From the NCBI GenBank assembly GCA_964035545.1, contig OZ037766.1:28565673-28629672 (forward strand): a DNA stretch of 64,000 nt, read 5' to 3'. The notes below the pieces were generated by a model, which made no database searches, was not told the DNA's origin, and saw nothing but the letters and a program-made list of their open reading frames with translations. Below, piece after piece: positions 10,967-48,304 of the stretch. The position numbers and the translations under genes were made by a program. Each line of letters starts with the position of its first letter. Position 1 is the first letter of the stretch. This DNA comes from Bugula neritina (Eukaryota > Animalia > Bryozoa).

Positions 10967-10967
10967 G

Positions 10968-10985: not shown

Positions 10986-10999
10986 AGTGTATATCAAAG

Positions 11000-11857: not shown

Positions 11858-11865
11858 AGGAGTAT
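11806..11865 (+). promoter_or_regulatory. Candidate programmed -1 ribosomal frameshift signal
   Basis: G_TTA_AAC in the gag frame, 5-nt spacer, then a perfect 10-bp GC stem (11818-11827 with 11841-11850). The -1 frame is open from 11764 to 12159. Confidence 0.7.
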
Positions 11866-16435: not shown

Positions 16436-16452
16436 GTCTTGTATTCCTATTC

Positions 16453-17526: not shown

Positions 17527-17783
17527 CTTGAGTCTACCTACAATTCCATACTACTCTTCCCCTACCTCTCTGTGGCATTCCCTACCGTAATGGTGGCACG
17601 TACTCTACATGTAGATAGGACCTTCTCTTACTTATTACTTATTGTGCACGTTATATATACCTGTATATTTTATCAGTTGTTTTTTTTTTGTATATACTTT
17701 TATACTGTTCTCTTACCCCCCCCACAACGAAGTATACGTTTTTTTATGTGAATTTTTTTTTATCAGAAAGTGGGCTTTCTGCT

Positions 17784-17794
17784 GGAGGGGGCAG
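17784..17794 (+). promoter_or_regulatory. Polypurine tract
   Basis: GGAGGGGGCAG immediately before the 3' LTR. Confidence 0.8.
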
Positions 17795-18100
17795 TGTGGT
17801 GGCTCGTGGAGCTACCAGCAACACAATACGCAAGGTTGTGTATTGACCCGGAACAATGTATTAGCCAATTAGCTAGGCTGTTTTATGAGTAAGAGTAGCA
17901 GCTTCGCGCTACTAGCTCAGTTGAGGATAGTGCTGTAAATTAAATAGACGTGTGTATCATTACTGTTGTACATTAGATTTTATTATGTATTCTTGTATTA
18001 AAATATAACGATATCTACTCGACTTAACTCGGTGAAGTTTCTCTAGTGATAAATAGACTCTCTTGGTGGCACATCAACCCTAAATCTGGAAAACATAACA
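17795..18100 (+). repeat. Gypsy 3' LTR
   Basis: 306-bp direct repeat of 10661-10966. Confidence 0.96.
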
Positions 18101-22400: not shown

Positions 22401-25400
22401 TGTTGAGACAGGAAAGCTTCCCTTGGTTGCTGGTTTCTTCGTACCCTTCAGGCTGTTGTGGATAGATTTCCTTATCGATTGGTGCGTTGAGGTACGCTCC
22501 TTTAACATCTAGTTGATGTATCTTCATGTTTTCATTTGCTTTTTTCTGTAACAGCAATCTGATCGATGTGAATCTGGTGGTTGGACTGTAAGTTTCGTCA
22601 TAGTCAACTCCTTGTATTTGTGAAAATCCTTTTGCTACGTATCTAGCTATATAATGAGTCTCACCTGAGGTTTTTTCCCTGCTTGAGGGTATAAACCCAT
22701 CTCTGCCCTTGGTCTTTTTTCTGTCTTCAGGTAGCGGCTGGATAGACCAGGTGTTTGAATCACGTAGGGTGTTCATTTCTTTGTCCATAGCTCTATTCCA
22801 GGCTTCTTTATTTTTTGAATTTACAGCTTCTTGGTAGGACTGTGGTAAGTTCGCCATCAGTGAGCAAGCATAGTCGGTGTCTTCTATGCATAGTCCTGTA
22901 GGTATGTAGGAAGCTTTCGTTTTCGTTCTGACTTACGTAGTCCAGGTTAGTCCGTGGCATTTGCTGAATCTGGTGCAAATTCTTGTGGCATGGTATTCTG
23001 GGTACCATTTCCACTGTTTTGTGTGGGTCCTTGTGGCATGATGTTCATTGCGTCATTTCTGCATTCTTATACAGGTTCTTGTGGCATGGTATTCTGAGTA
23101 CCATTTCTGCTGTTTTGTGCAGGTCCTTGTGGCATGAAGTTCATTGCGTCATTTCTGCATTTTTGTACAGGTTCTTGTGGCATGGTATTTTGAGTACCAT
23201 TTCTGCTGTTTCGTGGGGTCCTTGTGGCATGACGTTTATTGCTTCATTTCCACATATTTGTGGTATGACATTTCTGGATGTGACAAATTTCTGATTAGGG
23301 GTAAGTATAAGGTAATCTTTATCCTTTGTGTTGACACCAAAATATATGCCGCTTTTTCCCCGGTCATTGAGTTTTAACTATTTCCCTCTGAGTAGAATGT
23401 GCATTAGGATCTAAAAATGTGAATTTTCCTCATGTCAGCTAGCGTGCCTGTAAATAACTCATAGGCTGTCTTTCCCATCTGTCTCTGGTAGCTTCGGTTT
23501 CTTAGGTACTTGGCATGGTCAGCAGCAAAACTCCAGAAGGTCTTGGGAAGATTTGAATCTTTGAGTAGGCACCGTGCTGTGTCCATTATGGTGCGCCAAG
23601 TCCTCTCTGATTTACCATTCTGGTAGGATGAGTAGGGAGCTGTAGTGGTGTGTTTGATTCCCCTTTCACGTAGCACGGCTTCAAATGACTGTCCAAGGTA
23701 TTTCATACCGTGGTCAGTATGGATCTCCTTCACATTTCCTGTAGGTGCCACATCTGCGATGAATTGCTAAAGTGCAGTGGCGGCATCACTTTTGTGGTGT
23801 ATATTATAGGTGAACAACATGCTGGAAAATTCATCTATGAAGTTTATTATGTAGTTTTGTCCTCCTCTAGCAGTTGGTGTGATGGGTCCGCATAAGTCAG
23901 AGTGTACACGTTGTAGAGGCTGTGTAGCTTGTTCAGGTTTATCGTCTTGTTTGTGAGGTTGTTTGGTGATTTTACTTTTGTCACATGTCTTGCATGCAAT
24001 TTTTAATTATGCTCCGATTATGGTCATACCTGTTGTCACTTTTTCCAGCTCAATTATGTCATTGGTGTTTATGTGAGCCAGTGCCCTGTGCCAATCGGGC
24101 AGCGATTTTGCAGTATTCATTGAGTCACCTGCATTGGTTGTCTTGAGGAAGTACAATCTGCCTTTGGGCATGATTGGAAGAGTTGTCCTGTCGACTGTTA
24201 GTATATTTTTCTCTTTAGAGAAATTTACTTTTGCCCCTTTTTGTGTGGCAGCGTGGACTGAAAATAGGCTTGTTGGTATTGTTGGTGCCAGCAAAGCGTC
24301 TTTTAGATGAATCCGCTGCTTCATATTGTTGTCATCAGTAATAGTAAACTGATTTACTGAAATAATAAATGTGACGGATAAACAGAAGTTATCAGATAGC
24401 ATAACTCATACCCTTCACTTTGAGTCTAGGCAAGTCTTTAGTTGGTAACTTTGGCATTCCTTCCAAGGTCAGCTGCTTCAACTCTGTTTCTAATTCCTCA
24501 AATCTGTTAACAACATCTACCTGCAAGACGTATGCAATTAGTTTGAATCAGACTCCTCAGACTATTAGAAAGTTTAGTCTTTTATTAGTGCAACTGTTTT
24601 CAGATAACAGACTATGATCTGGTAACTCGAGCCTCGTTCTGGTACCAAGTGCCAGTAGAGTTTCTGGTATTTGATGATATTTCTATAAAAAACTAAATAA
24701 ATATTTTATATTCATTAAAAAGTAACTTCATTTAGACACTACCCTCAAACTATAAATAAAATATTTGCATCTTGTATACCTCATGGCTGTCCTTTACACT
24801 AACATCTAGTCTCTGAATTCCCACACTCAAACTGTCTAGTCTTTTAGCAACTTCCTCATCCATGAAATTAACTACTTCCTGTCTAAAGTTCTGTCTGTGT
24901 GTCATAAGTTCTGTTTCTATTTCATCATACTTGGCTTTGATGGCCGCAATCTATTAACAGTTACACGCCTCCATACTTTCATTGATTTAGTCATAAGTTG
25001 CAAAGTGACATTGAACGTTATTAGAAAAATTAAAAACTAAAATATTCATAAAAAGGTTAAATAAAAAGCAACTTTTTTCAAAAACATGTATCTAGTGCAC
25101 TTACAATATAATGATATATGATGACTTTTAAAATACATTATTGCAAGAACTATTTTAAAAGCTATTTTAATGCGTGTGAGCGTGTGCTTGTGTGCGTGTT
25201 GTGTAATATATAGAAAATATTATATCTGTTCGACTCTAACCTGCTCATCTCTTGTTTTATGTAAAAGTTCTTTCTGTTCCCCAGTCTCCTTGTCAATCTC
25301 TACTAAGGTCACATGACTCTGCTTTAAAAGAGTAGACAACTCTCCTTCTTTCTTCTGAGCTTCAGTTTTCAACTCACTAAACTTCACTCTAAGTCTCTTT

Positions 25401-27680
25401 ACTAGAGCTGTGAGAGACACGGCCTGGTGTCGGGAACCTGGAGGCAGAAATGTTAAAAGATAAAATAAAAATATTTGACACTGAACAGAGACAGTTTAAT
25501 AAATTTACTTTATCTAACACAATTCACAATGCTGTTTAAAATATTCCTGTTGCCACTTGGTAGTTTAGTATTAGTTAGTGAATAAAACTCACGAAAGTTT
25601 AGAGCCGCTATCCCTGTGAGAAACCCCTGATGGAAAGAATTTTTTGTTAAGGCGAGTTAAGGACTTATTTAAATGAGGCACAGGAGCAATTATAACTGGA
25701 TGCTTTTTTTAACATCACCAACAGCCTTTGTCCGAGCTTGAACCCATGACCTTGTGTTTACTAGACAAACGCTCTAACCCCTAGACCACGGCTGCTCCCT
25801 TATTTTTTAGTAAATAAGAGCTTGCTTATTTTATATATTTATTGACATTATGTGCACAAATCTATAAAACATTATTTTGAGAGTTATGTAATTTAAACTT
25901 ATGGTTGTGACAAGATACAGCGTAATAAAGTAGTACAGCTGTTTGCTGGTTCCTTTTTTGTCAAGATATATGAAATTCCAAATGCAGCAACAGTTTATTT
26001 GAAACATGTAACAGCAAATTACTTAAAGCTACCACTTGAAAATTTTTAAAGATATTTTTACAATATACAGTTAAATAGTTATTTATTGTTTGATTAGTTT
26101 TTACAAAATAGTTACTAAAAACAGTACTATAACATAATTTTGCTGCATGTTGAACATAATTTGTCACAAACGGTACCACAGCGCCATAGTAATGATTATA
26201 ATAATATGAACCCACACTACAGAATGTCACATTCCCCTACCTTCAGAGCAACCAGTAGTAGTATCTAATTCAAAAACAGCACTAAAATATACAAATATTT
26301 TTTCTGGTCGACATAATATTTTGCTACCCTATGTACTACAGAGTCATAGTAAGGATGATATTAAAAATAACCACCACTATAAAGTGAAACACTCCCCTAC
26401 CTTTAGGGCAACCACCTTTGTCATCCATACACTGAGCACACAACACACTGTGACACATTTCACAAGCCATGGAGACTACAACACTTGTGTGTGTCTTGCA
26501 GTAACGTGGTTCAAGCCTATTCTTTTCTCTGACATACTCATCTATGTGTATGACATGATGATCAGGGAAGATATCTCCATGGCCCTGGTAATATTATATT
26601 ACAGCATTAACTCATAGGACACCCTAAGTTAATGTTTCCTACAAAAATACGTTCAGTTACAAATTCTAAAGTAATGTTTATGTAGCAAGCTAAGAGTGAA
26701 ACTAATACAATAATATAATCCTGTATTAGGATTCAAGCAATATAGAGAAAAATAATATGCAAAGTAAAACTTTCTAGTTCACAAAATCAATCAAATATAA
26801 ACACTTATGTAATGCAGTGTAGCCAATTTTTGGGTTTCAGTATAATGTATATGTTTTATATTTTATTATATAGGATTTGTATATCAGTCACTTCTCATGC
26901 TTTAAATCTCAAGTCATACGATCTTCAAATTGTAAAACCAGACTTTAAATCGTTTAAGTTGCAAAAACTACCTGCTGCCATGAAAGATTTTCACACAATA
27001 AAAACAAAATCTCAAACAAAACAAGGATCTTTTTTGCACTTCCTATAAGAACAGGTTTAGCAGATGAATGGCTGTAAGCGTATTGATAAACAGTTTATTG
27101 ACATTAAAAGACAATTAACAAAAGAAAGCAAACCTCTTGGTGTTTAGCACAAAATCTCCTACTACATTGATGGCAGTAAACTGTAGCCTTTTCTGTAATA
27201 TTCTTTTGTTTACATGAGTCACATGCTAAGTCAGCAGTATCTAGCGAGGGCAACTCTGAAATACTTGTATCATATGTGGCTCTACAATAACAGTGTTTTA
27301 TGGGATACGAAATTCTCTATATGATATGGTGCAAAATAAAATTTTGATTAATCAAGTAAAGTAACATTTTAAATTATTTAAGTATATCGATAATTTCTAA
27401 ACAAAATTAAATTAACAATAATAGTTGTTGACAAAGTATACTGCCATGAATAGCTATATAAAATAAATTGAATTATTTTTTCCCTGTTACCATAAGTACA
27501 GAGTTAGCATATGACAAACCTGCAGTTACCACATTTGAGAACTTTTGTTTTTTCCAAATATTTCTCAAGACAAGTTGAGCAGAAGATATGGGAACAAGGA
27601 AGTGTCTTGAGATTAACTGTGTGTTCAAAACAGTAGCCACAAATCTCAAGCTCAGCAGATATAATCGAACCAGACGCCAT
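19424..27680 (-). CDS. TRIM E3 ligase, copy 2 (same architecture), about 587 aa, 8 exons
   Basis: Exons (minus): 27680-27520, 27281-27134, 26584-26401, 25437-25241, 24950-24780, 24520-24412, 20559-19882, 19539-19424. Same sizes as copy 1 except exon 7 (+3 nt). Splice sites intact and frame open. Confidence 0.88.
20617..20812. mobile_element. 15-bp-unit MITE-like element (paralogous insertion to 2281-2399)
   Basis: Same units and same intron position as in TRIM copy 1. Confidence 0.55.
21005..21290 (-). repeat. Copia 3' LTR (only LTR retained)
   Basis: TGTTGA..TCAACA ends; purine-rich TGAGGGTGCG abuts it on the minus strand; starts exactly where homology to copy 1 breaks. Confidence 0.8.
22981..23270. 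repeat. 96-bp tandem repeat (about 3 copies, 45+51-bp subunits) inside the Copia IN-RT linker
   Basis: tcttgtggcatggtatt recurs at 22981, 23077 and 23173. Confidence 0.85.
25605..25800 (-). mobile_element. tRNA-derived SINE (family A)
   Basis: A/B-box head followed by a gcatccagttataattgctcctgtg core; absent from the copy 1 intron; relatives at 40210, 41705 and 45523. Confidence 0.7.
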
Positions 27681-28491
27681 TGACTGAAATCCAGAGAAAG
27701 AATGTTAACATTTATACGAACACTCAAGACTAGTTGCAACGTGACTATAAATTCTTTGCTATTCACATTGATGATAAAACTAAAAAGGATCATTGTCATA
27801 GTTAAACGAGTAAGACTATAAATTAATTAAATAACATTCGTATTGACTACAACTTCGACTTGTGAGTATCAGTGTGAAATTCATCTTGATTTAGATTGTC
27901 GAGTGAGATTCAAATTAGAAATCAGAAAAAAGTCATTGTGACTTCAGTAATTGCAAAAAGCTCAGTAGCAATAAAAAGAACTAGTACTAATAGTAATAGT
28001 GAGTAACCAGAGTCGGAGTGTGTATGACTGTATCTAATAAATTTACTTTGAAATTAAAAATTACTAAATTAAGCCAAACATTAGCAGTGTTTATTTTGAC
28101 TTCTAGAATTGTACATTTTATTAATTTATATAATAGCTAAGATAGTTAACCTGAACTTCTCCACAGCAAGCAAGGTGGCTGAAGTTATCGAAATAAAAAT
28201 ACAAGTTTATCTTCCAGTAGTAGAAATAAAACTGGACTTTTACAACAACGAAGGCAACACCCCTTTGACGGGAAATGCTTATCAATGAACTCTCGTGCAG
28301 CTTTGTGCAACAGTGATTATCATGGAGAAATGTTTTAATAGGAGGTTTTCGTTATCTCCCTAAAGTTTTCTAATTACATTGAGACTATAACTCCAAGTGC
28401 TTTATAACCTTGATGGCAGATGCAAAAAAGAATAAAATAAAAGATCATTTATATTTAAATTACAGTGCTGCATTAATTTATAATTTTTGTA

Positions 28492-29250: not shown

Positions 29251-29999
29251 ATTTTTATAGTTCATAGTTCAGGTTAGTTGCGTTGTTGTCATTAAAAGTG
29301 TGTCTAGGAGGTATGGCTGAAGGATAGTGTATAGCAGGAGCACACAACTATGTTTGAAATAGGATTACTTGTGTTGGTTAAACTATCTTTTAGGGTCTCA
29401 CTTTTTGCCAACCAGTTACTGGTTTAGTGGTTTCTAAACATAATGATAAACTCATCACAACATAAATAAGTGTGAATATATTTTATTATTAACTAATTAG
29501 CAAACTGATTGATTGAGGTGATTGATCTTTTAGCTAGGAACTAAACTGTAATGCAAATATTGAAATAAGACTTGAGTTGTTAAAAACCTCCCCCTCTCCC
29601 TCTTCATAAAGTCATGAGTTAAACACTATAAATGTTGTACATTGTGCTATCTATGATCTACAAATATGGGTTCATATAATTCTACTAGAAGCTTATCTGG
29701 GCGATTTGTCTGGCCTCAACTTTTCAACTTAGATTTTGAAACCAATGAAAAAATAAACTTACAGTACCAAGATGCAGGGCACTCGGGAAGATTTTATTTG
29801 AAATTAGTCAATTTATAGACCAATCAAGAATTGTATGTTAAAATGTTATATTATCTTTTTATTATAGGTATACGGTTATACAATTCTCAGGTGTCACTTG
29901 GATGCTACAAGTTTCGATTATAGCCAATAATTGTATGAAAGTGTACAAATGCTGTTTTGAAGTTTATTCAATTTTATTCTTTAGCTTAGAAGGAAGAAA

Positions 30000-32900
30000 A
30001 TGGGTGGAATTATAAACCGTCAAGCTGATCCAGGTTAGTTTATGCAGTCACCTCAGTTATTAAATAGTGTCCACATTGCACAAAATAATGTTACAATCTC
30101 CAGCTACTAAATTTGTGAGCATAACTTCCGTTCTATTATATACATGTTTGTATATAATGGGTGGTGTGTGTTATCTGCTTGTTCCCTATGTGAAATGGGG
30201 CTAAAGTATAAGATTGAAGTTTACCCAAAAATATAATGTTTAATGTTATCCAATGCTTTCCCACTCACCCTATTGGCTTCAAAACCGCCATTGTCAATCA
30301 ATGATAAAAAATATGTTCACTAATTCGTGGGTGTAAGCTGCAACTTGACTATAGCTGATGCCCATTTATGAAGATAAGCATTTTTCTGACAAAGCAGTGT
30401 TTGTTGATTGGTTGAATCTTTAAAATAACCTTGAAATACCTGGCATTCTATTTACATAGAGGGAAAACTCTATACATATATAGCGTAGGGTGTTCCTATC
30501 AGAGCTTTATAGTGATAACACTTTGTATAAGCAGTATTTACCCTATAAACTATACACACTATAGCCTAACTAAGTTAATGGTTTATCAATTACAAACCAA
30601 TAAAAGTATATACATAGATGTATGTCTAAAATCTAAATATAGTAAGGATTTGTTATTGCATTAAATTTCAGCTGAGACAAAATTATGACTATGGATCGGG
30701 CATCAAAAGCAAGCAATGTGCTTTCCTAACTATTTTCTACTTTATGATTTTCAAATTTGTAGATAATGTCTGAGATATTCATTAATTAAGTGCTTTGAAG
30801 CTACTGAAAGTAAGAATTCATTGTTAAATCAAGGGCTTAGCTCTCATATTGTATACTTAGCAATCAAGCTATTATTACTAGAAAGCTTGACTATAGCATA
30901 CATACAGATTTACACCACTATTTCCTGTAAACTCCAAACCCCTATTGCCTGCATTTTACTTAAAACTTAACCATATTTTTAAAATAGAAATATTGCATCA
31001 CGCTCCTTTAGACAGTGGATCTTAATGTTGATTACTGAAATCTAAAATAGTTACTAGAAAATTATTGCTCTTGAAACTCTTGCAGCTAGAACTACTGTTG
31101 AGTGTATTCTTAACTTGGGCTTAGCTTTGTATATATGTATATATCGTATATAAAATAATTGTTACCGGTTAAACAAACTTGTTAGTTGGTGTTTATTTGA
31201 TGTGCTGCTATTACTAAAAAACTTTATCAGCTATGCAGTGTACAATTATTATGAAAACCATATTCAAATTGCTTTTACTCTTACTTATAATTTCAAAAGT
31301 TATATTTTAAGATAAAACCATTTTTGCATGACTTGTAGTTATTTCTTGTTCTTTCTCAATAACTAAACTATTATACATACCTATTACCTATATATTTGAA
31401 AGAAATTTATCTGTTTTAATAAAGTGATTTTCCTTTCAGAAAATTACACATCAAACATTAAGCTAGGTGATGTGTTAGGAACTACGAAAAGGTGTAAACA
31501 TAGAGATGTCTTAAAAGAGTATTGGGGTCAGCAGGTCAGCGAGATGCTAGTGGATGGAAGGCTTCCAGCTGCACTGTTTATGTGGTGGCATGAATCTCTG
31601 AGAATACTTCGTCTCAGAAACTTGAGCTCCACTGCAGACTTGTCAAGGTAAATTCAGTTTGATAACTTTTCAAGGTAAACTTAGTGTAATACCTTATATA
31701 TTTTTAAAATATTCTATAGATTGAGATTTTCTGCGCAGTAGTAACAGGTGCCTGTATTTGTACAGATGTTGAAAAACTTCAATACAGAAAAGTTTACTGA
31801 AAGTAATTTTATTTTGCTGATAGCATATATAAGCTTGATATTGCATATGCACATATAGATATTATTATGTAGATAACTGCAGAGCTATATGCAGTTTTAT
31901 TTCTTTGGGCATATGAATTTAAATGATTCGGCAATGCTATTCTAGCTGATAAATTGCAACCCAGCAATACTATCCTTATAAATTGCTACTGCAAGCTAGC
32001 AATGCTATCCTTATAAATTGCTACTGTAAATAAAACTGTATAAGAATAATTGTAAAAATCTTCTATTGTATATTTAATACAGCATTATATACAACTTCAT
32101 GTTTCAGCTGTTAAGGTATTATGGCAAACTTGTATTGTTTTAAATTATATTTTAACTGTTTAAGCTTAGCAATTAGAAAGTTATAGTAAATGTAGGATTA
32201 CTCTAACATATTTGTAATAGCTAAAGTGATGCGAGTTAATGTTTGGGAATTAAAATTGAATTTTTCTTTTAATGTTATTTGAAAAACTCGTATAGTTGAT
32301 TCATTTCGTAATGCTATTATTGTGTTAGTATTGTATTCTGCCATTTCATTTATTGCTAATCCATACTGGGAATATTAATATAATAATAGGTTGTTTACAT
32401 AACAAAAGTAAGAATTTATTTATTTATAGCTTGTCAAGACTAGTCAACCTGACTATCCTCAATTTGAATGACAACAACTTTAGCAAAGGATTCCCAGAAG
32501 TAGTTACATCACTTCCTTCTCTTAGAGCTCTGTGGATAGAAAATAGCAGACTAACCCAACTTTCACCAAGGTGAGCTGTATAAAATACACCTGAGTCGTG
32601 TCATTGTTTCTATTTTTTCTATAAAACTTACAATTAGTGATGTTTCATGGGGTTTCTGGTAGAAATGGCACATGTAAAATGGCACAGGTGAAGATGACAC
32701 AGGTAAAAATGGCACAGGTAAAAATGACACAAGTAAGACTGGCATAGGTAACAATAGCACAAGTAAAAATGGCACAAATGACAGAGTAGATAAAAATAGC
32801 ACATTTTCAATATTAGGATTTGAGATGGTGGTAGGGGTTTAGAATGGGGCTTAGCTTTGGAGATTGGGGTTTGAGTTTGGAGTTGGATTTAAAGGTTTGG

Positions 32901-35900
32901 GAAAATTTAACATTAATGTGCCATTCTTACCAACTTTTCCATTTGTGCCATTCTCACCTGTGCCATTTTTACCTGTGCCATTATTAGTTTCATAAATTAG
33001 GTATTTGTCTTTGAAACATAACTACCATTACTCTGCATAGCATAACTAACTTGAACTAGTTCTTATTGGTAGTGGTGACATATCAGCTATTTCTAGAAGT
33101 ACTGCTGATTGTTATAAAGTTTGAAGTAATTAAATTTTATTGCTCTTTTTTCAAAAATGTTGCTCATTTTTTAAAATTTAATGCTGAAACTTAATTGGTA
33201 ATGATTTTCCAAACGGCAAGCATAAATTTATTTCTTAGTCTGAATCAAATTTTTAGATCTTACACTTCGAGTTAGATAAATTAATAGGTGTTTCACTCAA
33301 AATATAAAAAATGATTAACAATAAAAGTTTTTTGTTACTTCAAATGTTCAAGTTAAAAACACTAAAATAGAAACACAGACCAGTGAGTGAAAAACAATTA
33401 ATTTTGTTTGGGTATAATGTGTAGCTCTTAAAATTAAACACTTTAAATGGAAAAGTTTCATTGGCTCAAGATGTTCATGCATTTCTGCTTTTTTATTTGT
33501 AGGCTATGCAAGCTGAAGAATCTTGAGCGTCTGTATTTGGATAATAACAATTTCAGTTCCGGACTTTCAGAAGCAGTTGCCTCCCTTGTATATCTTGAAG
33601 AATTATGGCTGAGAAACTGTAGGCTAACCTCTCTACCATCAAGGTTTGTGCTAAAAATGTTTTTGCAAATAATTGTGAAAAAAAGAGTTTTGTTTATTTT
33701 TTTCAAATAACTTTGAAGCAGTTTGACCTAATTATCTTGGAGATAGAAAGCAAAGAGCCAATTTGTGGTTAGCATAGCAAATATTATTTGATAACTACTT
33801 GTACCGTACCCAACTCTAATAGATCAGATGTTAGAAACTCAGACCATAAGAGTTATCTTGTCACCAGTTATAGTCTTGTGAGGCTGAATGCTGAAAGATT
33901 TTAACAAATCATGTATTTAGACTGATATAAACAGGGTATAGTTGATACTTAGATGATAGCTAGACTATACTTTAGTGATGTTTAGATAATACCTGGATAC
34001 CTAGGTGATACCTGGATAGTGCCTAGGCAATGTCTGATGCTACCTAGGGAATATTGTCTAGGTCATACCCATGCAGGTGATATTATCTAGGTCATACCCA
34101 TGCAGGTGATATTATCTAGGTCATACCCATGCAGGTGATATTATCTAGGTCATACCCATGCAGGTGATATTATCTAGGTCATACCCATGCAGGTGATATT
34201 ATCTAGGTCATACCCATGCAGGTGATATTATCTAGGTCATACCCATGCAGGTGATATTATCTAGGTCATACCCATGCAGGTGATATTATCTAGGTCATAC
34301 TCAGGTCATAATATCTAGGTCATACTCGAGTCATAGTATCTAGGTCATACTCAGGTCTTAGTATCTAGGTCACACTCAGATGATATTATTTAGGTCATAC
34401 TCAGGTCATAATATCTAGGTCATACTCAAGTCATGATATTTAGGTTACACTCAAGTGATGTCTAAGTAATGTTCCAGGGATATTTCTGTCTGTTTCAGCT
34501 TTGTTAGGTTGAGTCGTCTAAAGACCCTCGACTTGAGTGACAACAACTTCAGTTCTGGTCTGCCAGAGGTGCTCACGTCACTCACTGCACTTACAGATCT
34601 GTACTTAGAGAATTGCAAACTAACTGCTCTGCCTTTGAGGTAAGGGGATAAAGAGTAAATAAATTTTAATGTTAGAATTGTGAAACAAGTTGTAAAATAA
34701 TTGCCCCCACTGGGAATCGAACTCGAGCCCTCTGGCTTGCAAGCAAGTGTGCTACCATTACACCACGAAGGCCAAATGTGAAATGGTGCTCCATGATTTT
34801 GTATGCAAATATAAGTTTTTAAAAGTTCTACCGACATTACGCGTGAACTACTGAGTATTTGATTTTCAATATTGTAGTTAAATTATTGTAACGTCTACAT
34901 TATTTATTATTTTACCAAATAGTTGAGTTTTACTGTAGTTGAATTGCAATAATATATCAATAATATATACATTATGCATTATTCTACTACAGTATGTACA
35001 ACATGCAAATGTTGGATAGTCTCAGCCTACAAAACAACAACTTCAGCTCAGGTTTTCCAGAAATCATCACTTTCCTCAAGTTCTTAACAAGGCTAAACAT
35101 GCAGAGCTGTAGCTTGTGGGCTTTACCGCCTTTGTAAGTATTATCTAGAACTTTATATACTGATTCACTGACTACACTAGGTACAGAGGCTACAGCATTG
35201 CGATTAACAGATACAATCATAAACATAATAATTATTATCATAATGTTGTAGATCTTGAACTGAATAAATATGTTATTATTTTAACATAAAGTATTGCAAC
35301 TACAAATAGAACACATTTAATTTAGCTTTCCACCATTAAACTATGTGCTCAATATAAAGAGTTTTACAGTGTACCGATTACAATTTGTGGTACATCAGTT
35401 TTTAAAAATAATTATTAGGTTGTATGAAAATATACTATACTGTAATATACTATGCTGCATCATATACTACATTGTGTGGAATACAATGTATTGTAGTGTG
35501 CTGCATTGCATCGTGCTTCATGCTATTATATTGTATTATATCACATTATTGTGTTATATTTTGTTCTGTTGTATCATATGTCTTGATATAATCTTATAAT
35601 ATATTATAATGTATAAAATATTGATTACCTACATTGGCTATATAACAGAGTTGCAGTGCAATATAGCTTCTATAGTCTCAAATACAATATAATATCTTTG
35701 TAGACTGGCAAATCTTCAAAGACTTAGGATTCTAGAGTTGAATGGTAATGACTTTATCATTGGGCTGCCTCAAGTCGTCACATCATTTGAATCACTCATA
35801 TGGCTTAAGATAGGGAACTGCAGACTAACTTCCCTTCCTCCCAAGTAAGAGACCTCTTCTATATGTTATATAAGACTGTTACAATGTAATGTAATACCCC

Positions 35901-38900
35901 TACCTCAACTTGTATAATGTATTGACTGGAGAATATTGGTGAAATTATTTTACTTGTGATTAGTATATAGGCCTATTATGATTTTTTTCTTACAAACATA
36001 GTATGAATTACCATATGTTTCGGGTATACTAATCACTGCTAATCAACTGCACATTCATTCACTTTTACAACTTGCATAAGTGTAAGTGTCCTACAAGGAT
36101 CCTAGACATTGTACATTGTGACACTAGGCACTATGCAGTATGCATTGTGATAATTGATAGCTGTTTTTCCTAGTAATAAATAAAAGTAACACAACTCCAA
36201 AACAAAAAAATTAAAAGCAAGCCCTTACTTCAACGGCTGAAAAATTATCAAAATATTATATGACAAGTCGTAGAATTTTTAGCTCATCAGTGTTCAGCAA
36301 ATTATGACAATAGTCTTTAGTAAATTTAATATCTGGTGGCAAAAGACAAATTTTTTTATATAAAGATTAAAAAATATATAAGTTGTGCTAAAACTGGATG
36401 AGATTTTAATATTACAGACTTGTATAATTATTTAGCAGCTTAATATAATTAATTATTCTTTATTTGCTAACAAATTATTATCAATTTCTATTTTTTAGCA
36501 TTGAAAAGCTACAGCAGCTTAAGCACTTGGATTTGGCTGAAAATAATTTAACAACACTCCCTGAAAACGTGTGCAAGCTGGAAAAATTGGAGACATTGAA
36601 TTTGGAGAAAAATCCCCTTTTGGTGTCTTTGAATTTGCAAATGTTGAAGCTGAGTAACTTGAAAAAGCTAGATGTGCGAGAATGTGCAGCTTTGTCAAAT
36701 CCACCTAAAGAGATCTGCAAAGAAGGTTTGCCAGCCATCTGGCAGTTCTACAGAGATTTGGCTAAAAGCGATGGCCAAAATCAACCTCTGGTGACGGTTG
36801 CAATAATTGGAGCTGCTTTTGCTGGGAAAACAAGTCTAATCAGAACTTTACAAAATCCTGAAAAGGTTCGAGTTCTGACTGACCGAAGTCCTGATGCTGT
36901 TGTTGATGAAACTACGAAGGTGTTTAATATAGAAGAAGTAGAAGTAAACAACACAATTCTCAGACTAGTTGATATGGGTGGACAGGAAGTGTATCACATA
37001 ACTTATCAACTTACATTGAAACAAAACTGCATTCCAATTGTAGTTGTGAATATGGAGCATTACCGAAAGCAAGCTACAGCTTCTGGGCACAGAGAGGCTA
37101 CAAGAAGACTGGCATTTGATTGGTTGGCGCATTTGTACGTCGCGAATCCCGCCCTTGGTCCTGCTAAGCTTGTTTTGACCCACAAAGACAAATTTTCATC
37201 AGATGAGTTTACTCAGTTGAAAGAGCAGTTTATCATTACTGTGAATACAATTCGCAACGAAATTGTAAAAGAAGATGCAATTTGTGAAACAAAGTTAAAA
37301 AGAATTCAGCATTTCATTGACAGCGAAAGTGTTTTTGCTGCTCGAGATGTATACGAAATCGGAAAGAATGATAGCTATGCTGTGTATGATAAGTTAATAC
37401 TCAGCATATTTTATTCTTGTCAAAAGTTTACCAGAGTTCTGCCCAACATCTGGCTAGAGATTGAGGAAGTGGTCTCAACGCTCCCCTCTGTGTATAGTAC
37501 AGAAGATCAGATTATTTCAGAGCTGGATAAAGCTGGAAAACCAATGTTGCCAAGTGAATTACACACAATCCTAACATACATGCATGATAGTGGCAGCCTT
37601 CTAAAATATGAAGATATTGAAATTCTCAGGCCTTACATTTTTCATAAAATCTCGGAGGTTACGAAGTTGCTGACAGTTCTATACCACCATGATGACAAAG
37701 TTTGGCAAACAAGAAAACAAATGTTTCAACTCATAGCTTTACCTGGCGAAGAGGCACTAGAGAAAGAGCACTTTGAAAGTTTGATCTGGTCATACCAAAC
37801 AACTGGAGTTATGGACCAACAGCTTTTCTGCTATTTGATAAAAACAGAAACTGGGTTTAAAAGTGACGTGGATGCTCAGTTAGCTTTATCTCTCCTTCAA
37901 TCTTTCCGTCTGCTGTATGGACCACTAACTATAAATTCCAGACCATGCCTCATTGTTCCGTCTTTTCATTCTGAGTACCATCAGTCTAACTTTCAAATCA
38001 AGCAAGACATCACGTTGCAACATGAAATACTCTGCAAAGGCCTTCCAGTACCACTTTACGTTTATCACCAGATGACCGTGGACGTACTGAAAATGTTTTC
38101 AGAGAACACAAATTCTGTCTCCATAAAGAAAAACGGAGTCAAACTGTTTCACGATGGCTCGTTCCTCAATTTTGTCCATGACGCTTTTTCAAACAGAATT
38201 ATCATCCAAGTGGCATCAGCTGTGAGGAAAACTACGCATTCGTGGAGTAATCTGATTGATATTGTCAAGACTATTTCTGCCAATGTGGTTGAGGCATGGC
38301 CAGCTAGCAGACTGATGCACATTTCCAGCTGCTCCCATTGCCTTCTGATCAACAATCCTCATCCGGCAAGACAGATTTCTCCGGGCTGGTGCAAACAAAA
38401 TGCTTTCTCGGAAAAAGCTGTTTACCAGAAGTTCTACAGCGTGTTCACTGTCTTGTGTAATGGAGACCAGATACCAAGTCTTTTTGTCAATCCTTGTAAG
38501 TTATAGTTTCAAATTGAGGCTAATATTAGTTTGCTAAAGTTTTTAATATGTGTGGGTAAACCCAAAACATCAGATTCTATGACCATTCAAAATTTCCCAT
38601 TTTTAGAGCTACATTATTCAAAAAGTTTTTTATTTGTTACGTACACATAAAGGGGACTGAGATTAGCATTAAATCTTAAATGTTAGAAGTGTGTAAGCAT
38701 TATATTGGCGCTATTCCAACATGAATGACATGTAGGCTGCTGAATCAGCTATTGATCTTTTAGTGAAGTTTATTAGTTTTAAGGAAATATACTTTTGTTT
38801 TTTGCAGGCTTATTTTTAGATGACCATGAGATGAATCACCTCAAAAAAGTTGTGACCAAGTTGAAGAACAAATCAACTCAAAGCAGCCAAAGGCTTGCAG

Positions 38901-41900
38901 GTAAAGACAATTCTTCTATTAAACTGTCATTAATATTGCACATCTGTTGTACATAAAGTTTATTTTTAGTCTACAACACAACGCTTTTTAGCCCTATTTG
39001 GCTATTCCACACACAAGGTATTATAATATCCTATCTGCAGATTTTACAGAAGTCTTTGCTAACTAACTTAAATAAGCTGCTAGTAAATATGGCATTATGA
39101 AATAGGGTCTCAAATAAAAGTTTAACTTGTCCCTGAAAGTAGAATTATAATTTGCGCACATTTGCTTGCTTGCACACGCACGCACGCACACACAACAAAT
39201 AAGTAATGCATATTTGAATAATCATGAAATATCTTCCCATATAAAATGTAGGTGAAGAAGTTGAAGAGGTCCATACAAAGACAGCTGGCACTTCCGTCAG
39301 CTCATCTGCCAAACAACGTAAAGGAAAACAAAAGTCAAGTCATCTGGGCACGAGTATATAACTTAATTATACAGTTGCTAAATTCAAACTACCATGAAGT
39401 TTAGTGTGGTGTATTATATAAGCAGTATTTATAGTTGTAATTGTCCTACTTTGACGTTTATACTGTTTTGTATAGTAACGAAGTATATGAACCAAAACTA
39501 ACCACAGTTTTATCCAAGTAGTGGCATTCCATGTATTTTATAGAAAATAGGTATAATACTGATGTAAGGTTACCTGCTCCCTTTTGATTTTACAAGTAAA
39601 TACTAATTATCCAATTTATGATGTATTCTATAGCTAACTAGCTGCAAGATCACATATTATTGCTACTATATTGTATGGCTTGTGTTATTCTTAGAAAACT
39701 ATATGCTTTAGAAACATATGCATGAATTGGTATATATGGTATATGGTATATGGTATGTGCGTGTGCGTGTGCGTGTGCGTGTGCGTGTGCGTGTGCGTGT
39801 GCGTGTGCGTGTGGGTGTGCGTGTGCGTGTGCGTGTGCGTGTGCGTGTGCGTGTGCGTGTGCGTGTGTGTGTGATGGCTAATATGTTAAGTGCATTAGTG
39901 ACTTTTTCGTATCATCTTATACAGCTTAGTCATATATTATTTTGGTAGAAAAACGTGAAGATACTCTATTCACTACATTGGAAGTTCCACGAGAGAAACT
40001 GACTTTAGAGCCGGCAGAAAAAGAGGAAGTGGATCCACTGTCTGATGATGATGACTACATGGAGCCGGCTGATGACCCCGAAGGTCACGATGTGCTCTTG
40101 AGACTTCCTGTAATACAAACCAGGAAAGAGCGCATTAAAAAACTTTTTTTCAACAACGAGAAGGTATATTAAATGTATTAAAAACCCAATAAGCTTTATC
40201 GAGTTTATTGTGCTATCCCTGCAAAACCCCTTAATGGAAAGGGTCTTTTTTAAAACAGGCTAAAACTTCACTGATGTGACACAGGAGCAATTATGACTGG
40301 ATGCTTTTCTTAACACCACCGCTGGTGTTTGAGCTCAACCATTGATTTGGTGATTACTAGGCCAACACTCTAACCATTACACCAAACTTGCCTTTTTTAA
40401 ATTTAATATTTGAATATAAACAATATGCAATGAACACTTAGTCAACATTCTTAAAACTTGATTAATACCAATTTTAGGTGTTTCTAATGACAAAGACCAG
40501 AGGGAGAGCATTGATAATCAACAATCAAAAGTTTGCTCACTCTCCAAAAAGACATGGCTCGAAAGCGGATGTTAAAAACTTGAAGTACATGCTCAAAGAA
40601 TTGAAGTTTGTCGTATCGTTATTTGAGAATCTTTCAGCAAAGGTACAAGTCATAATATTTTACTGTAAATATATTTAGAAACTATCATTTTTACAACAAC
40701 TATAAAATATTATAAAGATTTGGTTTTAAAATTACTTAAATTTGAATTCACAGTTATATAGCCCTAAATTTCAACATCTATGGGATGCTGTTTGCCTGCT
40801 ATAGTGCTTAAATCAAATATACCTGCTGAGCCCGTTTGCTACACGAACTCCATGCTTATGTATCTCTGAACTATGTTATACTTTTTCTTTTTTACGTTTT
40901 TCTTAGTTAGATTAGTATTAGAGAAGATGGGGGTCTTCACCAAGCTTAAGTATGCATTGCTGTTGCTGCTTGTTTCATGTTATCAATATGCGTTTTGGTG
41001 TCCCTAGCATGGTCAAGGTGTTCCAGGGCTTTGCATTCAAATAGTACTGCATCTGTATTTTACTACAGTTGTTTATGCCAACTTGATCAGGCTATTGCTT
41101 GATCAGTTTTGTTTGTGTACTATTGCAATTCTCATTTTTATGGAGCAGACAATTTCTTATTACATCATGGTTTTTATATAGAGTAAGTTTTAATAACTGG
41201 GAAATAGCATTTTGTACCCTCCTTAATATTAGTCTATGCTTGATTATTAATAGCGGTAACTTTGATAGTCAGCTGCTTTTTAAAAAAGGAACACCTCAGA
41301 GTTGATGGCCGCTTTTATAGACAAGTTTATTCTGTCACCCTATCGGCCATTGCAATTTCTTTAGTTGAATAGCAAACATTTTAGAAAGATAATCTGAGCT
41401 ATATATTTCATTCGTTTGTTTTTTAAACTATTTTATCGTTATATACTTTTGAACAGCTTTATCCCAGATTTATCATTAAGTTGTTTATTTTGCTTTAGAC
41501 ACAATATTTTAAGTTGATGCTTTATTAGAAACTGTGTTGTAGCAATTAATTTAAAATGTTTGATTTAAGAATGACATCTTATACACAAAGATATCAATAC
41601 CTATAAACGTTTTGCAAGTTAGTGATGGGTGCTGTTTTGAAGCATTGAATAAAAATTGTTACTTTTCCATAACTATCAACAGTTTATAAAAGTTTTATAA
41701 CATTTGTGGTCTTTGGCTAACATGCTGACCTATTAAACACAAAGTTAGTGGTTCGAGTCCTAGCACTAGTGGTAGTGTTAGGAAAACATCTAGTCAAAAT
41801 TGCTTCTGTGCTACATATGAATAAGTCCTTAGCCCAATTTAACAAAAACCTTTTTAATCAGTGGTTTTCACAGAGATAGCAACTATAAACTTGCATGAGT

Positions 41901-44118
41901 TTATAAGACTGTTACAAATTTGCAAGTCATTTTATAATTTCAGGACATGCTGCATGTCATCAGGAACGAGGTTGCCGACAAACGTCATGCAGACTACGGA
42001 ACATTCTGGCTCTTTCTCTGCTCCCATGGAACTGACTCTAACCACATCTATGGTTCCGATGATGTTCTGGTGAACATGAGAGATGTGTACGATTTACTTA
42101 CGGCTTGTAACTTTCCTGAAATGGCTGGTAAGCCAAAGATGGTTGTAATACAGGCTTGCAGTGGAGGTAAGCTTGCTGTTTTATACAAACAGAAGGAAAT
42201 AATTTGGATAAATTCAAATTCAGTTATGCAAAAGACATATTAAGATTTTTTTTTTTAAATAAAATAAAACAACTGTGAAATTTTTTTTCAAAGTGGTTTT
42301 AGTCTGTTAATCTAGGTTCAAATATAATATTTTTGTCATAAATATGTTTTAGACAGAATAGATGGTGGTGGTAAAGGAATCTACACATTGAGTAAAGAGG
42401 AGAGTTTAAGTGTATCTGAGAAAGGTTCACAGACGGTTGTTAGAGCTCTTACTATGCAACGTGATGGTAAAATGGAGAAAAAAATGGAGGGACTGAACTA
42501 CGATGATCTTCTTACTCTCAAGTCCAGCTTTGAGTGTGAGTATTTTGTGTTGCAGCTTTACTTTACAATGTGTAGCCATTTATATGCTAATTATATAATG
42601 ATTGTTCACCCACTTCTATCTGCACCTGTAATATATGCTGTGAGTCATTGTTACATATATGATATACACCATATACACTCTGAAATTTGAAGCTCAAGTG
42701 TGTTAATTAGTATTTAAATGAAGATATTATATTTTGAACTATAGCTGGACTAAATTCATTTACATGTATTACAAGAATGTCAAACATATTAGATGCACAT
42801 AAAAACATACACTGTTAACAGATGGTTATAAATATGTTTTTTTTAAACAATCATGCTGCAGTTGTATGCATTATAAAGCAAGTCTAATAGAAATGAGGTG
42901 ATTAAGTTTGTTTTAAAACTTACTGAGAAAAACTCCAGTTTGATTGTCTGATTTGTTGAACCATTTGATAAAGTTAAAGTTGAGCATATTTTTGGTAATT
43001 TTAAGAAATTATTACTTTTATGTGCAGGTTTAAGTTTAATTATAGGCATAACACACCAATAGGCAATTTTTTATTTAAATGATATATTGTGTAATTAAAT
43101 TAAATTTTAAAAATATAACATGCAAGAGAAATCTTCATATAAAATCAAAAGGCTATACCCTCTAAATTGCAGTTTTATTTTAATTTTTTCAAAGGGTATT
43201 GCAATCCTACTCTGTCTCAGAAAACCAAAAATTTTCTAAGAATTATTAAAATAAATTTTGTTGCTTGAAATTAACAGTATGTCATTGTTAATATGAATAT
43301 GGCTTTTTGAATAGATATCAAGTTATGTCTTAAACTTCCCCTTTTCCGTTGATCTGACAAAATATTATTAAAGTTTTGACCTCCCTTTTCATATGACAAA
43401 GTGTTAGCTACGTAAGGAGTAAAACAGTTTAGCATGTGGTAATATAAATGGATTTTATTTCAGCATTTGTATCCAGGAGACACCCAGTCTATGGCTCTCT
43501 GATGATACGGTGTCTGGTCAGGACAGTGTGTCTTCACGCCTGTCATCGGGATATGTACGAGATCTTCAGAATCGTAAGAATCTAGCATATTCTTTCTAAT
43601 TAATGTTAGTGCTGGGCCAGTACCAAGGAACATCTTTCTTAAAATCAGCTCAGCACTGTGATACAGAATTCATACTATTTTTAATTATACTGCATAATAG
43701 TTCATATAGGGTTGTAAGTACATAGAAACTTTTGAACTATTTCCTTTGGCATCTTTGGGAGATATGAGAGCAGACACCTAAAATATTGTAAATATGCAAA
43801 ACACATGATTGTTTAGCAAAAATGAAGAATATAGCAAAATTAAATCATCAAAATAAAATTTTGCAAAGCAATAAGTCATATTTTGATTGGATGTTTTATG
43901 GAAACTAATAAGCCATCTACCTTTTAGCTTGCTAAGATTTCTTTTCTATCATTAACTAATGATGATCTGTGTAGGTACAGCAAAGAGTGAGAAAATTCTG
44001 TATAAGAAGAGACCTTGAGTCTCGTCAGTTGCCAGTGGTTACAGATACGCTCAGTTATATGAGAAAGCTTTATCTCTTCCCTGGATACAATGGATCTCGG
44101 CTAGAAACCAAAAAGTGA
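30000..44118 (+). CDS. LRR-ROC-COR-caspase fusion protein (MFHAS1-like Roco core plus C14A caspase), about 1380 aa, 16 coding exons
   Basis: Exons: 30000-30033, 31440-31647, 32430-32570, 33503-33643, 34499-34639, 34993-35133, 35704-35844, 36499-38495, 38808-38900, 39252-39317 (or 39353), 39949-40163, 40478-40642, 41944-42166, 42353-42535, 43464-43573, 43975-44118. All GT-AG and phase-compatible. Motifs: GAAFAGKTS, DMGGQ, THKD, COR LTYMHDSGSLL..LYHHD, caspase RGRALIINN, CSHG, QACSG, VSRR, LYLFPG. Confidence 0.85.
32649..32985. mobile_element. 15-bp-unit MITE-like element, longest copy
   Basis: Tandem ggtaaaaatggcaca left arm, gggttt-rich centre, inverted right arm. Confidence 0.6.
34057..34460. 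repeat. Minisatellite: 8 identical 29-bp units followed by degenerate ~25-bp units
   Basis: tctaggtcatacccatgcaggtgatatta at 34057, 34086 ... 34260. Confidence 0.95.
34703..34773 (-). repeat. tRNA(Ala-UGC)-like dispersed repeat or pseudogene
   Basis: TGGTGTAATGG A box and GTTCGATTCC B box; anticodon stem pairs poorly. Confidence 0.6.
39756..39872. repeat. (GTGCGT)n microsatellite
   Basis: Direct reading. Confidence 0.95.
40210..40390 (-). mobile_element. tRNA-derived SINE (family A)
   Basis: Shares acaggagcaattatRactggatgc and the tail with 25605-25800. Confidence 0.65.
41705..41892 (+). mobile_element. tRNA-derived SINE (family A)
   Basis: GGTTCGAGTCC B box; core catctagtcaaaattgcttctgtgc; same tail. 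Confidence 0.65.
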
Positions 44119-45326: not shown

Positions 45327-48304
45327 ATGGGAAGTAAGCGAAAATACTTTTATCACAGCCAAAGAAAGAAAAAGAAGCTTATTTTAAACTTGCAAGGAAA
45401 GAAAGCCAAAGCTCAGCCCACACAGGAAAATGGTTTTGAAGGGGCATCAAGCACCTCCCCTAATGCGGTTAGTAAAGATCCTAAATTGTGTTTTAAATAT
45501 GGCTACTGTTGAGACTTTTCAATGAGAAGCTGTAGTTTAATGGTTAAAGCACTGACCTAGTAGATACTAGATCTTGTGTTCAAATCTTGGCAGGGCTATT
45601 GGTAATGTCAATAAGGGTAGTTATTATTACTCCAGTACCACAAAACACTCTCAATTCATGTTGCCTTAACAGTGAGAGATCTTAGTCTTAGCCCTTGCTA
45701 TTAGGGGCTCTCACAAGGGTAGATAGTTTAAACTAACATCCCTCAGGAAAGATGTACATATCTATACGTAAAATTATTTGCAAGGATAGTGGATGTTCGT
45801 TAGTCTCTAATGATATTTTTGGTGATTATCAAATGGTTGAATTACTTTTATAGCTAGGTTCATTAGTTCTGCACAAAGCAATTGCTCGGCTGCAGCATAT
45901 ATATTAACAATGGGCAGCTGACTTTATCCTAGTATAGCAGTAATGTGTAGCGCAGCAACATCCTAGCCAATAATTTTTAGTAGGTAATTATGCATCTAAA
46001 TTTTACATTTTTGTAAATATATCAATGAAATTAAAGCAACATGAAGAAGAGCTGGTAACCTTATACCTCCTTGCTAAGTGTTTCGTCTAAACAGCTCAAA
46101 ATTGTTTATTTTAATACAAATTATTGCTTTAAATGGCACTCAATAAAATATATTTAAGAAGCACTCTTGTAAGGTTAGTTATATCAATAAAAAGAAATAT
46201 ATTAGTAATTAAAGCTGTTTCATGGAATATAGCTTTAAACTTGTAAATGGTAATAACAGCACACCACTGGGTGTAACTTGTTTGGGTGAATTTAAATATC
46301 ATAATATGAGACATTTTCTTGGGCAAGAGTAATCATGAAACTCTTTTGAAAACAGAAAGTGAAACCTCTAGGAACTTTTATTGAAATAAAAAATTAAGAG
46401 ATTGAATAAAATTCCATGCTCATTGCAGAATAGAATTTAAATTTAAGCAAAGCTTTAATTGGTTTATGATTGTGGGTAATAAAATCCTGAATTAATAGGC
46501 ATGGCATCACCATTTTGTATTAAAATTTTTTACTGAATTGTTATAGGCTGATGCTGATGGGAATCAACTGGATAACAACTCTACAGGCACAAAAGAGTCA
46601 GTAATACTGACAAATGCGGCCAAAAATTCAAGTTTTCGAAAGATTAGTCTATATCGTTCTTGTACAGCTGGTATCACAAACACTGCTAGTGTTACTACTG
46701 CAGATATTAAAACAAGCCCAGATGAAGTTGAGGGTAATGATCAGTGTAGTGGATATAGAGTAGTGAGTTTGAAGTTTCTATCTGACCTGGTATCTGCTGC
46801 AGCTTGTCCTTCTTGTGGATATCAGAGGCTCGAATTTGCTGAGTCAGCAAAAAAGGGTCAGGCTTCCAAATTTTCGGTGACTTGTTCTGAGTGTTTAGAG
46901 TCTACATTTTCTGACTTTTCTTCTTCTTATGTTTCAAAAACAAAATGCCGATCACATGATATAAACTATAGATTTGTATTCAGCTGTAAGGCCAATGGGT
47001 TGGGGTATAAACAAGCAAGAAACTTCCTCTGTGACCTTAATACCTCCCCTCCCATTTCTTACAGTGGTTTCTCCACGGCCCTCAACTCTCTTTATGAGGC
47101 CAGTAACACTGCCATCAGTGAGCACTTTGCTCAGATTAGAAGCATCGTTAAGCAACAGTACATAAGAATGGGACAAGCTAGTTGTGATGCAGATGTTGTG
47201 AACATTTGTGTTAGCTATGATGGTACATGGCAGAAACGAGGTCATTCCTCTCATATTGGTGTAGGAGCTGCTATAGATTTGCTAACTGGTTATGTGCTTG
47301 ACTTTGAGATATTGTCAAACTTTTGTGCTGAATGTGAAAAAGGACCACGGAAAGATGATGCAAAATATGTTGAGTTTAGGAAAAAGCATGAAGGAAACTG
47401 TCACAAGAACTTCCATGGATCGAGTGGTATGATGGAGGTGGAGGCAGCTAAGCGAATCTGGGAGCGCTCTGTAACACAAGAGCTTCATTACATAACAATG
47501 TTGAGTGACGGGGATGCAAAGGCATATGAAGCAGTTTCAAAGTTGAACTTTTATGGTGATAAGAAGGTACTCAAAGAAGAGTGTGTCAATCATGTTTCTA
47601 AGCGATTGGGCGCTGCATTAGAAAAGCTTGTGGCAGACAGCAGAAAGCAGTCCATTAAACTTGGAGGCAAAAATGGATTAAACAGAGTATGCATTCAAAG
47701 GTTACAGACTTACTATATGAATGCTATTAAAAAGTACACAGGAAACTTAGAAGAAATGAAGAGAGAGATCATGGCTGCTCCGTATCACGTAACCTCAACA
47801 GAAGAACAAGCACAGCACCAGTTCTGCCCAGCAAATAGCTGGTGCAGCTACAAGAACTCAGATAATAAGGAGCCAGTCTTAAATAAACTTCCTCCATATT
47901 TTTTAGAATACCTACTTCCAGTGTATGAGAAGTTGTCCGAAACAAAGTTGCTTGGGCGCTGTCGTAGAGGGGCAACACAAAATGCAAACGAAAGTTTTAA
48001 CGGTGAAATATGGCGGAGATGCTCTAAAACAACATGGGTTGGCCCAAAATCTGTAAAAGTAAGTGCGAATTTTGCTGCCATTGTGTTTAACAGCGGCACA
48101 GAAGAGCTAATAAAAGTGCAACGAATCTTTGGTTTAGTAGACGGTGAAAATGTGTTGAGAAATGCTAAAAAAATGGACTCTACAAGAATGGCTCAAAAAA
48201 GAAAGTGTCCCATTGCTAGAAGAATAAGGAAGCAAAAGCAGATTAAAGAAAGGCAGAGACAAATTCAAAAAGAAGGTGTGGGATATGCTGCTGGCAAATT
48301 TTGA
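45327..48304 (+). CDS. DDE transposase of the Kolobok / Mutator-like type, 2 exons, about 632 aa
   Basis: Exon 45327-45467 (basic, NLS-like) splices in phase 0 to 46547-48304. Motifs: CPSC..CSEC zinc finger, SYDGTWQKRGH, GSSGMME, LSDGD, ECVNHVSKR, TQNANESFN. Element termini not found. Confidence 0.8.
45523..45735 (+). mobile_element. tRNA-derived SINE (family A) inside the transposase intron
   Basis: A/B-box head tagtttaatggttaaagc..gttcaaatc and the family tail. Confidence 0.55.

Follow-up and report, generated by a model that had tools for sequence, protein, structure and literature searches.

A 64,000-nucleotide stretch of the genome of the bryozoan Bugula neritina (contig OZ037766.1, positions 28,565,673 to 28,629,672 of the forward strand; hereafter, the window) carries at 30000-44118, on the plus strand, a gene predicted to encode a leucine-rich repeat (LRR) array, a ROC GTPase domain, a COR domain and a caspase in one polypeptide. 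On the evidence of its sequence, this locus is one intact gene, and it would belong to an expanded group of bryozoan MFHAS1-like Rocos with an acquired animal caspase as the C-terminal effector. The domain order itself was already known; what is new is an animal, lineage-expanded Roco-caspase family in bryozoans.

The gene model comprises 16 exons, all of whose introns are GT-AG and of compatible phases. Phases and junction codons were checked with a script, exon by exon, and homology searches were made either with single exons or with database proteins. The spliced coding sequence has 4179 nt (1392 amino acids plus the stop codon), with zero stops within the exons or in the codons formed at their junctions. 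The exon ends, phases and junction codons thus bear out the original prediction of 16 exons in one open frame, including the three linker exons (9-11) that lead in phase up to the caspase, whose frame and splice sites are intact, and the GTAAG donor at 38496, located just 5′ of a TAG (38504-38506) that belongs to the unspliced sequence. As an acceptor-like AG (29988-29989) stands just 5′ of the start ATG, exon 1 is probably not the first transcribed exon. Between 29199 and 29989, a TATA-like box (~29200), a GTAAGT donor (29246) and an acceptor (29989) suggest that a short first exon, without coding sequence, lies 5′ of the ATG, and an AATAAA-type signal is present at 44289, 3′ of the TGA stop. 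A second haplotype, L005, was available for comparison (overall identity 92%; the contigs of its source, a JGI metagenome, are labelled AY690838, the Bugula neritina mitogenome accession). There are several in-phase donors in exon 10, and the alternative at 39318 was rejected because it is absent from L005, which keeps 39354. When the window was scanned, neither additional, hidden LRR exons nor another Roco or caspase gene was found. The features of the gene are as follows:

30000..30033, +, exon 1 (coding part): start ATG, N-terminus Met-Gly
31440..31647, +, exon 2: N-terminal cap region, degenerate LRR at its end
32430..32570, +, exon 3: 141-nt phase-2/2 module, two LRRs
33503..33643, +, exon 4: 141-nt phase-2/2 module, two LRRs
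34499..34639, +, exon 5: 141-nt phase-2/2 module, two LRRs
34993..35133, +, exon 6: 141-nt phase-2/2 module, two LRRs
35704..35844, +, exon 7: 141-nt phase-2/2 module, two LRRs
36499..38495, +, exon 8: 1997 nt; final three LRRs, ROC, COR
36773..37432, +, ROC GTPase domain: Pfam Roc, motif conservation in 80 homologues, fold
37448..38495, +, COR domain (COR-A and COR-B, as modelled): CxHC at 38330-38341, near-invariant Cys at 38456-38458, terminal Pro-Cys
38496..38506, +, donor of intron 8 (GTAAG); the TAG of the unspliced sequence is at 38504-38506
38808..38900, +, exon 9: helix after COR; the LxDxE motif of the family is weakly matched (E 0.046)
39252..39353, +, exon 10: low-complexity linker; pN/pS 0.92, near-neutral evolution
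39949..40163, +, exon 11: acidic linker and a conserved segment into the caspase (E 6.8e-6)
40478..40642, +, exon 12: beginning of p20 of the caspase, with an S1 Arg at 40550-40552 (equivalent of Arg179)
41944..42166, +, exon 13: catalytic His at 42025-42027 and Cys at 42157-42159 (QACSG)
42353..42535, +, exon 14: intersubunit linker, start of p10
43464..43573, +, exon 15: p10, with an S1 Arg at 43478-43480 (equivalent of Arg341)
43975..44118, +, exon 16: last part of p10, stop TGA

Opposite-orientation copies of a very abundant dispersed repeat, which resembles short interspersed nuclear elements, occupy 40212-40384 and 41730-41905, in the introns flanking exon 12, and a further copy lies at ~25600; the copies of this repeat explain huge peaks in read depth.

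The protein is a Roco, as it has a Roc domain with G1-G4 and a COR domain directly after it. The G motifs, which had been described as intact, were all placed in exon 8: G1 is GAAFAGKTS (36809-36835), with Lys426 as the P-loop Lys, G2 is ETT (36908-36916), G3 is DMGGQ (36971-36985) and G4 is THKD (37178-37189). Pfam supports the Roc assignment over its cut-off (2.5e-6, 28.2 bits), and all of the G motifs, as well as COR, are strongly conserved among 80 homologues. Pfam did not detect COR on exon 8, and homologues match its COR-A weakly. The earlier claim of a COR domain is nevertheless borne out by the predicted fold. An AlphaFold model of exon 8 obtained from the 80 homologues (pLDDT 89.6, pTM 0.87) matches over its whole length LRRK1 (E 3.2e-22), the LRR-Roc-COR protein of C. 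tepidum and LRRK2; it aligns with residues 1241-1857 of LRRK2, the Z values against LRRK1/2 being 22-25, and its residues 317-665 match the isolated COR of 3dpt (Z 15.3). Because of this model and these fold matches, the region directly after Roc is taken to be a COR domain that is too divergent for Pfam. Three cysteines of exon 8 (Cys611, Cys614 and Cys653) are invariant or nearly so in the homologues, the fourth being at the splice junction, and the CxHC of COR-B is common to bryozoan, amphioxus and Lingula Rocos; the COR-B cysteines may form a zinc site.

The protease is, by its sequence features, an animal-type C14A caspase. Exons 12 and 13 match Pfam Peptidase_C14 (4.9e-11 and 4.1e-13, respectively), and the best match of exon 13 is CED-3 (5e-11), followed by caspase-2, -6, -8, -9 and -3. 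The catalytic dyad is formed by His1201, in SHG, and Cys1245, in QACSG, both of which align with CED-3, and the equivalents of the S1 pocket residues Arg179, Gln283 and Arg341 are present, as placed against caspase-3 through P0098, a model from Watersipora. While p10 was not detected by Pfam, its exons match relatives instead, so that both subunits of the original prediction, p20 and p10, are accounted for. In exon 15, a Leu follows Gly-Ser where relatives carry Trp or Phe. The linker between p20 and p10 contains candidate Asp residues, among which broad conservation is limited to the Asp that immediately follows QACSG and the DD with which p10 starts. The QACSG motif lacks the executioner-type Arg, a feature shared with caspase-8 and -9, initiators that need induced dimerisation.

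Whether ROC-COR and the caspase are joined in one transcript was assessed with low-depth contigs from probable RNA runs, which are ~90-97% identical to the gene and come from alleles or close paralogues. These contigs splice exons 11 to 12, 12 to 13 and 13 to 14 (to within 2 nt), indicating that the linker and the caspase are co-spliced. Consequently, among the junctions predicted between COR and the caspase, that from the exon at 39949 to 40478 is joined, while the path 38495>38808>39252>39949 is spanned by none of the RNA-type contigs, which do not cover exons 9-10 either; one of them (X1) includes the 3′ part of the COR exon as far as 38492, 3 nt short of the donor. The missing contig across the joint is one of the arguments for two products rather than one. 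The main transcript would then stop in intron 8 (TAG at 38504-38506), where a poly(A)-like hexamer, ATTAAA, is found at 38668, giving a plain MFHAS1-like LRR-ROC-COR protein, and the caspase would be a separate gene or isoform. The same could be read from two Watersipora models, P0099 without and P0248 with the caspase, which are nearly identical in ROC-COR.

We consider this two-product alternative very improbable, as the indirect evidence for a COR-to-linker splice is strong, coming from a family-wide donor, the retention of splice sites in L005 and the fused models of Watersipora. Regarding the donor, Pro-Cys is found within the last 70 residues in 71 of 86 fetched proteins (560-760 aa); the next residue is Lys in 38 of the 71, Glu in eight and Met in most of the remainder, with unrelated tails thereafter. 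This pattern in homologous open reading frames (ORFs) is the footprint expected of GTAAG, GTGAG and GTATG donors that a prokaryotic gene caller has read through, and the same donor after Pro-Cys is predicted in paralogues merely 30-36% identical. In L005, every donor and acceptor tested from exon 8 to exon 12 is kept, as is the frame of exons 9-11. Additionally, the end of X1 so close to the donor, together with the union of the same exons by RefSeq in Watersipora, speaks against two products. The gene is under purifying selection, the ratio of non-synonymous to synonymous polymorphism (pN/pS) against L005 being 0.14 for ROC, 0.14 for COR, 0.33 for exon 9, 0.92 for exon 10, 0.22 for exon 11 and 0.18 for exon 12. 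The single-chain LRR-ROC-COR-caspase anatomy originally proposed is thus supported, and it is also conserved in Watersipora. A minor isoform devoid of the caspase may still exist, given the ATTAAA in intron 8 and the 11 Watersipora models of the family that have no caspase.

The LRR array, which is recognized by Pfam, comprises 13 canonical repeats; the original estimate of about 14 holds for these, the fourteenth being a probable degenerate repeat at the end of exon 2. Exons 3-7, each of exactly 141 nt and phase 2/2, are 46-61% identical to one another at the DNA level. Exon 2 had no Pfam match, and nothing similar to it was found in the Watersipora models tested. Against L005, the LRR exons have a pN/pS of 0.38, with two non-synonymous and zero synonymous changes in exon 7. 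The Met-Gly N-terminus, also present in several Watersipora models, could be myristoylated, placing the protein on membranes, and is a weak lead. LRR exons 4 and 5 are separated by an intron with a 29-bp minisatellite (34051-34425, 13.6 copies), and a 15/45-bp array (32658-32781) lies in the preceding intron.

Fused relatives are found in the same phylum. In Watersipora subatra, 14 RefSeq models have ROC-COR and caspase, 12 of them shown to retain QACSG or QACGG; in models such as XP_067947674.1 and XP_067948342.1, a single chain comprises LRR, ROC-COR and caspase. Exons 8, 12, 13, 15 and 16 of the window match complete Watersipora models in order. Furthermore, the layout is shared by the gene of XP_067947674.1: it has LRR exons of ~141 nt and a single large LRR-ROC-COR exon, which likewise ends at Pro-Cys/GTAAG; its linker exons are short, and the borders of its p10 exons match. 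The caspase-less P0099 would be either a truncated annotation or a real paralogue without caspase, in the latter case a potential decoy. In B. neritina itself, the GenBank model EB796_002463 contains Roc, COR-A and caspase. About 25 JGI ORFs are 43-47% identical to the gene and, together with many more relatives at 25-40% from ENA and Logan, indicate a large family; three JGI ORFs were traced to samples with a Bugula label. Besides a caspase, a Logan protein of 1028 aa (P0225) has several further Pfam domains, whose accessions we read as ankyrin-type, and it represents another type of fused caspase.

The best non-bryozoan matches that could be identified are MFHAS1-like proteins of amphioxus and Lingula, which end in a GT4 glycosyltransferase, OTU or a caspase in amphioxus and in CARD in Lingula. 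For instance, XP_002614028.1 of Branchiostoma floridae (BRAFLDRAFT_67388; 1609 aa) consists of LRR, Roc, COR-A, COR-B and Peptidase_C14 (5.9e-51), with QACRG and almost no linker. Given these effectors and the TIR carried by Aplysia Rocos, the earlier statement that animal Rocos carry a kinase, a death domain or no effector was incomplete. As in bacterial AP-GTPase systems, effectors seem to be exchanged among the MFHAS1-like Rocos of invertebrates. A quick maximum-likelihood tree of ROC-COR was made without P0113 and P0172 (no P-loop match) and without P0052, P0064 and P0065 (origin unknown), and had no identified vertebrate MFHAS1 among its rows. In this tree, in which the bryozoan branch is long and the group labels of unnamed rows are assumed, the bryozoan rows form one group and the bacterial rows another (100 for both), and the amphioxus caspase fusion nests among amphioxus GT4 and OTU Rocos; these placements suggest that the caspase was acquired by separate fusions. 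A recent bacterial origin of the gene is unsupported, as the bacterial rows group apart, the gene is spliced and its caspase is animal-type.

Comparable architectures have been described before. Kaur et al. (2021) reported bacterial proteins with LRR, AP-GTPase and COR whose C-terminal effectors, caspase among them, number at least 24 (PMC8195603), and LRR+AP-GTPase+COR+caspase architectures such as OQX07365.1 are in their source data, with a predicted role against invaders (PMC8195603). The domain order is identical, with the effector C-terminal to COR, but the bacterial proteins are only predicted, and the bryozoan gene differs in having 16 exons, an animal-type caspase and a ROC-COR that falls outside the sampled bacterial Rocos. 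Zhang et al. (2008) described amphioxus "LRRs-caspase" hybrids, with no mention of Roc or COR in the text (PMC2575513). The novelty that the original prediction implied for the architecture was consequently too high, considering the bacterial listing (PMC8195603), these hybrids (PMC2575513) and XP_002614028.1. The latter has the same four parts and shares CxHC with our protein (422 aa of LRR-ROC-COR align at 26% identity), but only one model of it, predicted on an old assembly, is available, and it is probably a separate fusion. No paper on a bryozoan Roco-caspase family, or testing any Roco-caspase, was found in the open-access literature.

The LRR-ROC-COR core is like that of MFHAS1/MASL1; RefSeq calls the Watersipora relatives MFHAS1 homologues, and the nearest Atlas clusters are MFHAS1-like (scores <0.9, a lead only). 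MFHAS1 itself is not known to have a C-terminal enzyme. The fold of LRR-ROC-COR also resembles that of LRRK1/2; in these and in DAPK1, the effector is a kinase, whereas here it is a caspase, no protein kinase domain having been found and the exons after COR encoding the linker and the caspase. Another type of C-terminal peptidase, IPR009003, is trypsin-like. It is carried by a few of the brown-algal ROCO proteins, an expanded family of candidate immune receptors with symmetric phase-2 LRR exons (PMC11378527). Their exons are of 72 nt with a single LRR, instead of 141 nt with a double LRR, and caspases are unmentioned there (PMC11378527). Finally, sensor repeats, a nucleotide switch and caspase activation by proximity are reminiscent of the NLR inflammasome, the Apaf-1 apoptosome and the PIDDosome, as a functional analogy. 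By contrast, those are ring-forming STAND ATPases that recruit a separate caspase via death-fold adaptors, while the bryozoan protein has a Ras-like GTPase with a COR expected to dimerise, and its caspase is part of the same chain. As its nucleotide domain is a Ras-like Roc and not NACHT or NB-ARC, the protein does not belong to the NLRs.

The explanation that we judge best, and reasonably probable, is that of an intact single-chain Roco-caspase that would be fired by LRR/nucleotide-gated COR dimerisation. It is proposed because the C. tepidum Roco is mainly a monomer in its GTP form and, when nucleotide-free, a dimer held via the C-terminal half of COR (PMC6337361), and because caspases fused to inducible dimerisers become active (PMC2575513). 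The modular LRR array might bind a foreign or danger ligand or, alternatively, keep the protein closed. Ligand binding or clustering on membranes would alter the nucleotide state of ROC, and the COR-B domains would then dimerise, the GDP or empty state being "on" by analogy with the Chlorobium Roco. As a result, two tethered caspase domains would meet and activate like initiator caspases, and the active caspase would cut Asp-containing substrates, killing the cell or sending a signal. Such a protein would work as an NLR, an adaptor and a caspase in one chain. Two further points favour this explanation: at this position, the sister Rocos of amphioxus and Lingula exchange effectors of immune type (GT4, OTU, CARD and caspase), and the bacterial analogues are predicted to act against invaders (PMC8195603).

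Several observations weigh against this explanation. In addition to the unspanned joint between COR and the linker and the 11 Watersipora models without caspase, the two haplotypes compared show mildly relaxed constraint on the LRR exons and not clear diversifying selection. The tether from COR to the caspase, of ~135 residues, is also Asp-rich, long and flexible, which could leave the caspase uncoupled from COR. Such a tether would suit an LRR-ROC-COR that serves as a prodomain, inhibiting or localising the caspase, which would be freed from COR when an upstream caspase or a pathogen protease cleaves the acidic linker; the near-neutral evolution of exon 10 and an acidic SDxSD motif conserved in the linker of the Watersipora relatives fit this. 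However, the strong conservation of the G motifs and COR in the 80 homologues suggests an active switch, and the Arg-less QACSG resembles that of the dimerisation-dependent initiators caspase-8 and -9. On balance, we regard a cleavable prodomain as unlikely.

Bryozoan zooids regress cyclically, which counts for a role in development or metabolism: rather than recognising pathogens, the protein could be a death switch that senses, for instance, GTP levels or membrane damage when polypides are recycled or at metamorphosis. It has also been considered that Rocos may serve as GTP sensors (PMC6337361). Nonetheless, a large family of divergent paralogues (the ~25 JGI ORFs at 43-47%) fits immune recognition better, and the shuffle-ready symmetric LRR exons resemble those of the brown-algal ROCO candidate receptors (PMC11378527); we find a death switch of this kind a shade less credible than the prodomain. 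Extending the dimerisation-fired Roco-caspase to the whole phylum, the main intracellular immune receptors of bryozoans might be a large, LRR-exon-shuffling Roco-caspase family that replaces NLRs, with a ligand-driven GTP-to-GDP switch, COR dimerisation and direct firing of the caspase in a single chain, a design that would have evolved independently in bacteria, amphioxus and bryozoans. This is a tentative proposal, and we lean towards doubting that it holds in full.

The remainder of the window contains several other elements. A Ty3/Gypsy-type long terminal repeat (LTR) retrotransposon at 10661-18100 is a recent insertion, given that its 306-bp LTRs are 99.7% identical; it has a gag-like ORF, protease, reverse transcriptase, RNase H and integrase over several frames, and an additional ORF of 357 aa (16453-17526) with no Pfam match. 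A segmental duplication (1-6049 and 18315-27699, 73-87% identity) includes, on the minus strand, two ORFs for beta-propellers (1525-2340 and 19856-20698), and within its second unit there is a fragmented Copia-type element (RVT_2; 21298-24402, minus strand). Downstream of the Roco-caspase gene, a single ORF of 513 aa (46763-48304) encodes a Mutator-like transposase (Pfam 1.5e-61), and an exon of an APH-family phosphotransferase is found at 54767-55201 on the minus strand.

For LRRK2, it is still a matter of debate how the nucleotide and dimer state of ROC-COR governs output (PMC6337361). A natural Roco with a dimerisation-gated protease output, if true, would offer a direct fluorogenic readout of the ROC-COR cycle. 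It would also mean that a cell-death receptor of animals can have a Roco GTPase for its switch, in parallel to STAND ATPases. We found no paper on the bryozoan immune system, and the gene described here provides a concrete candidate for innate immunity in this colonial phylum.

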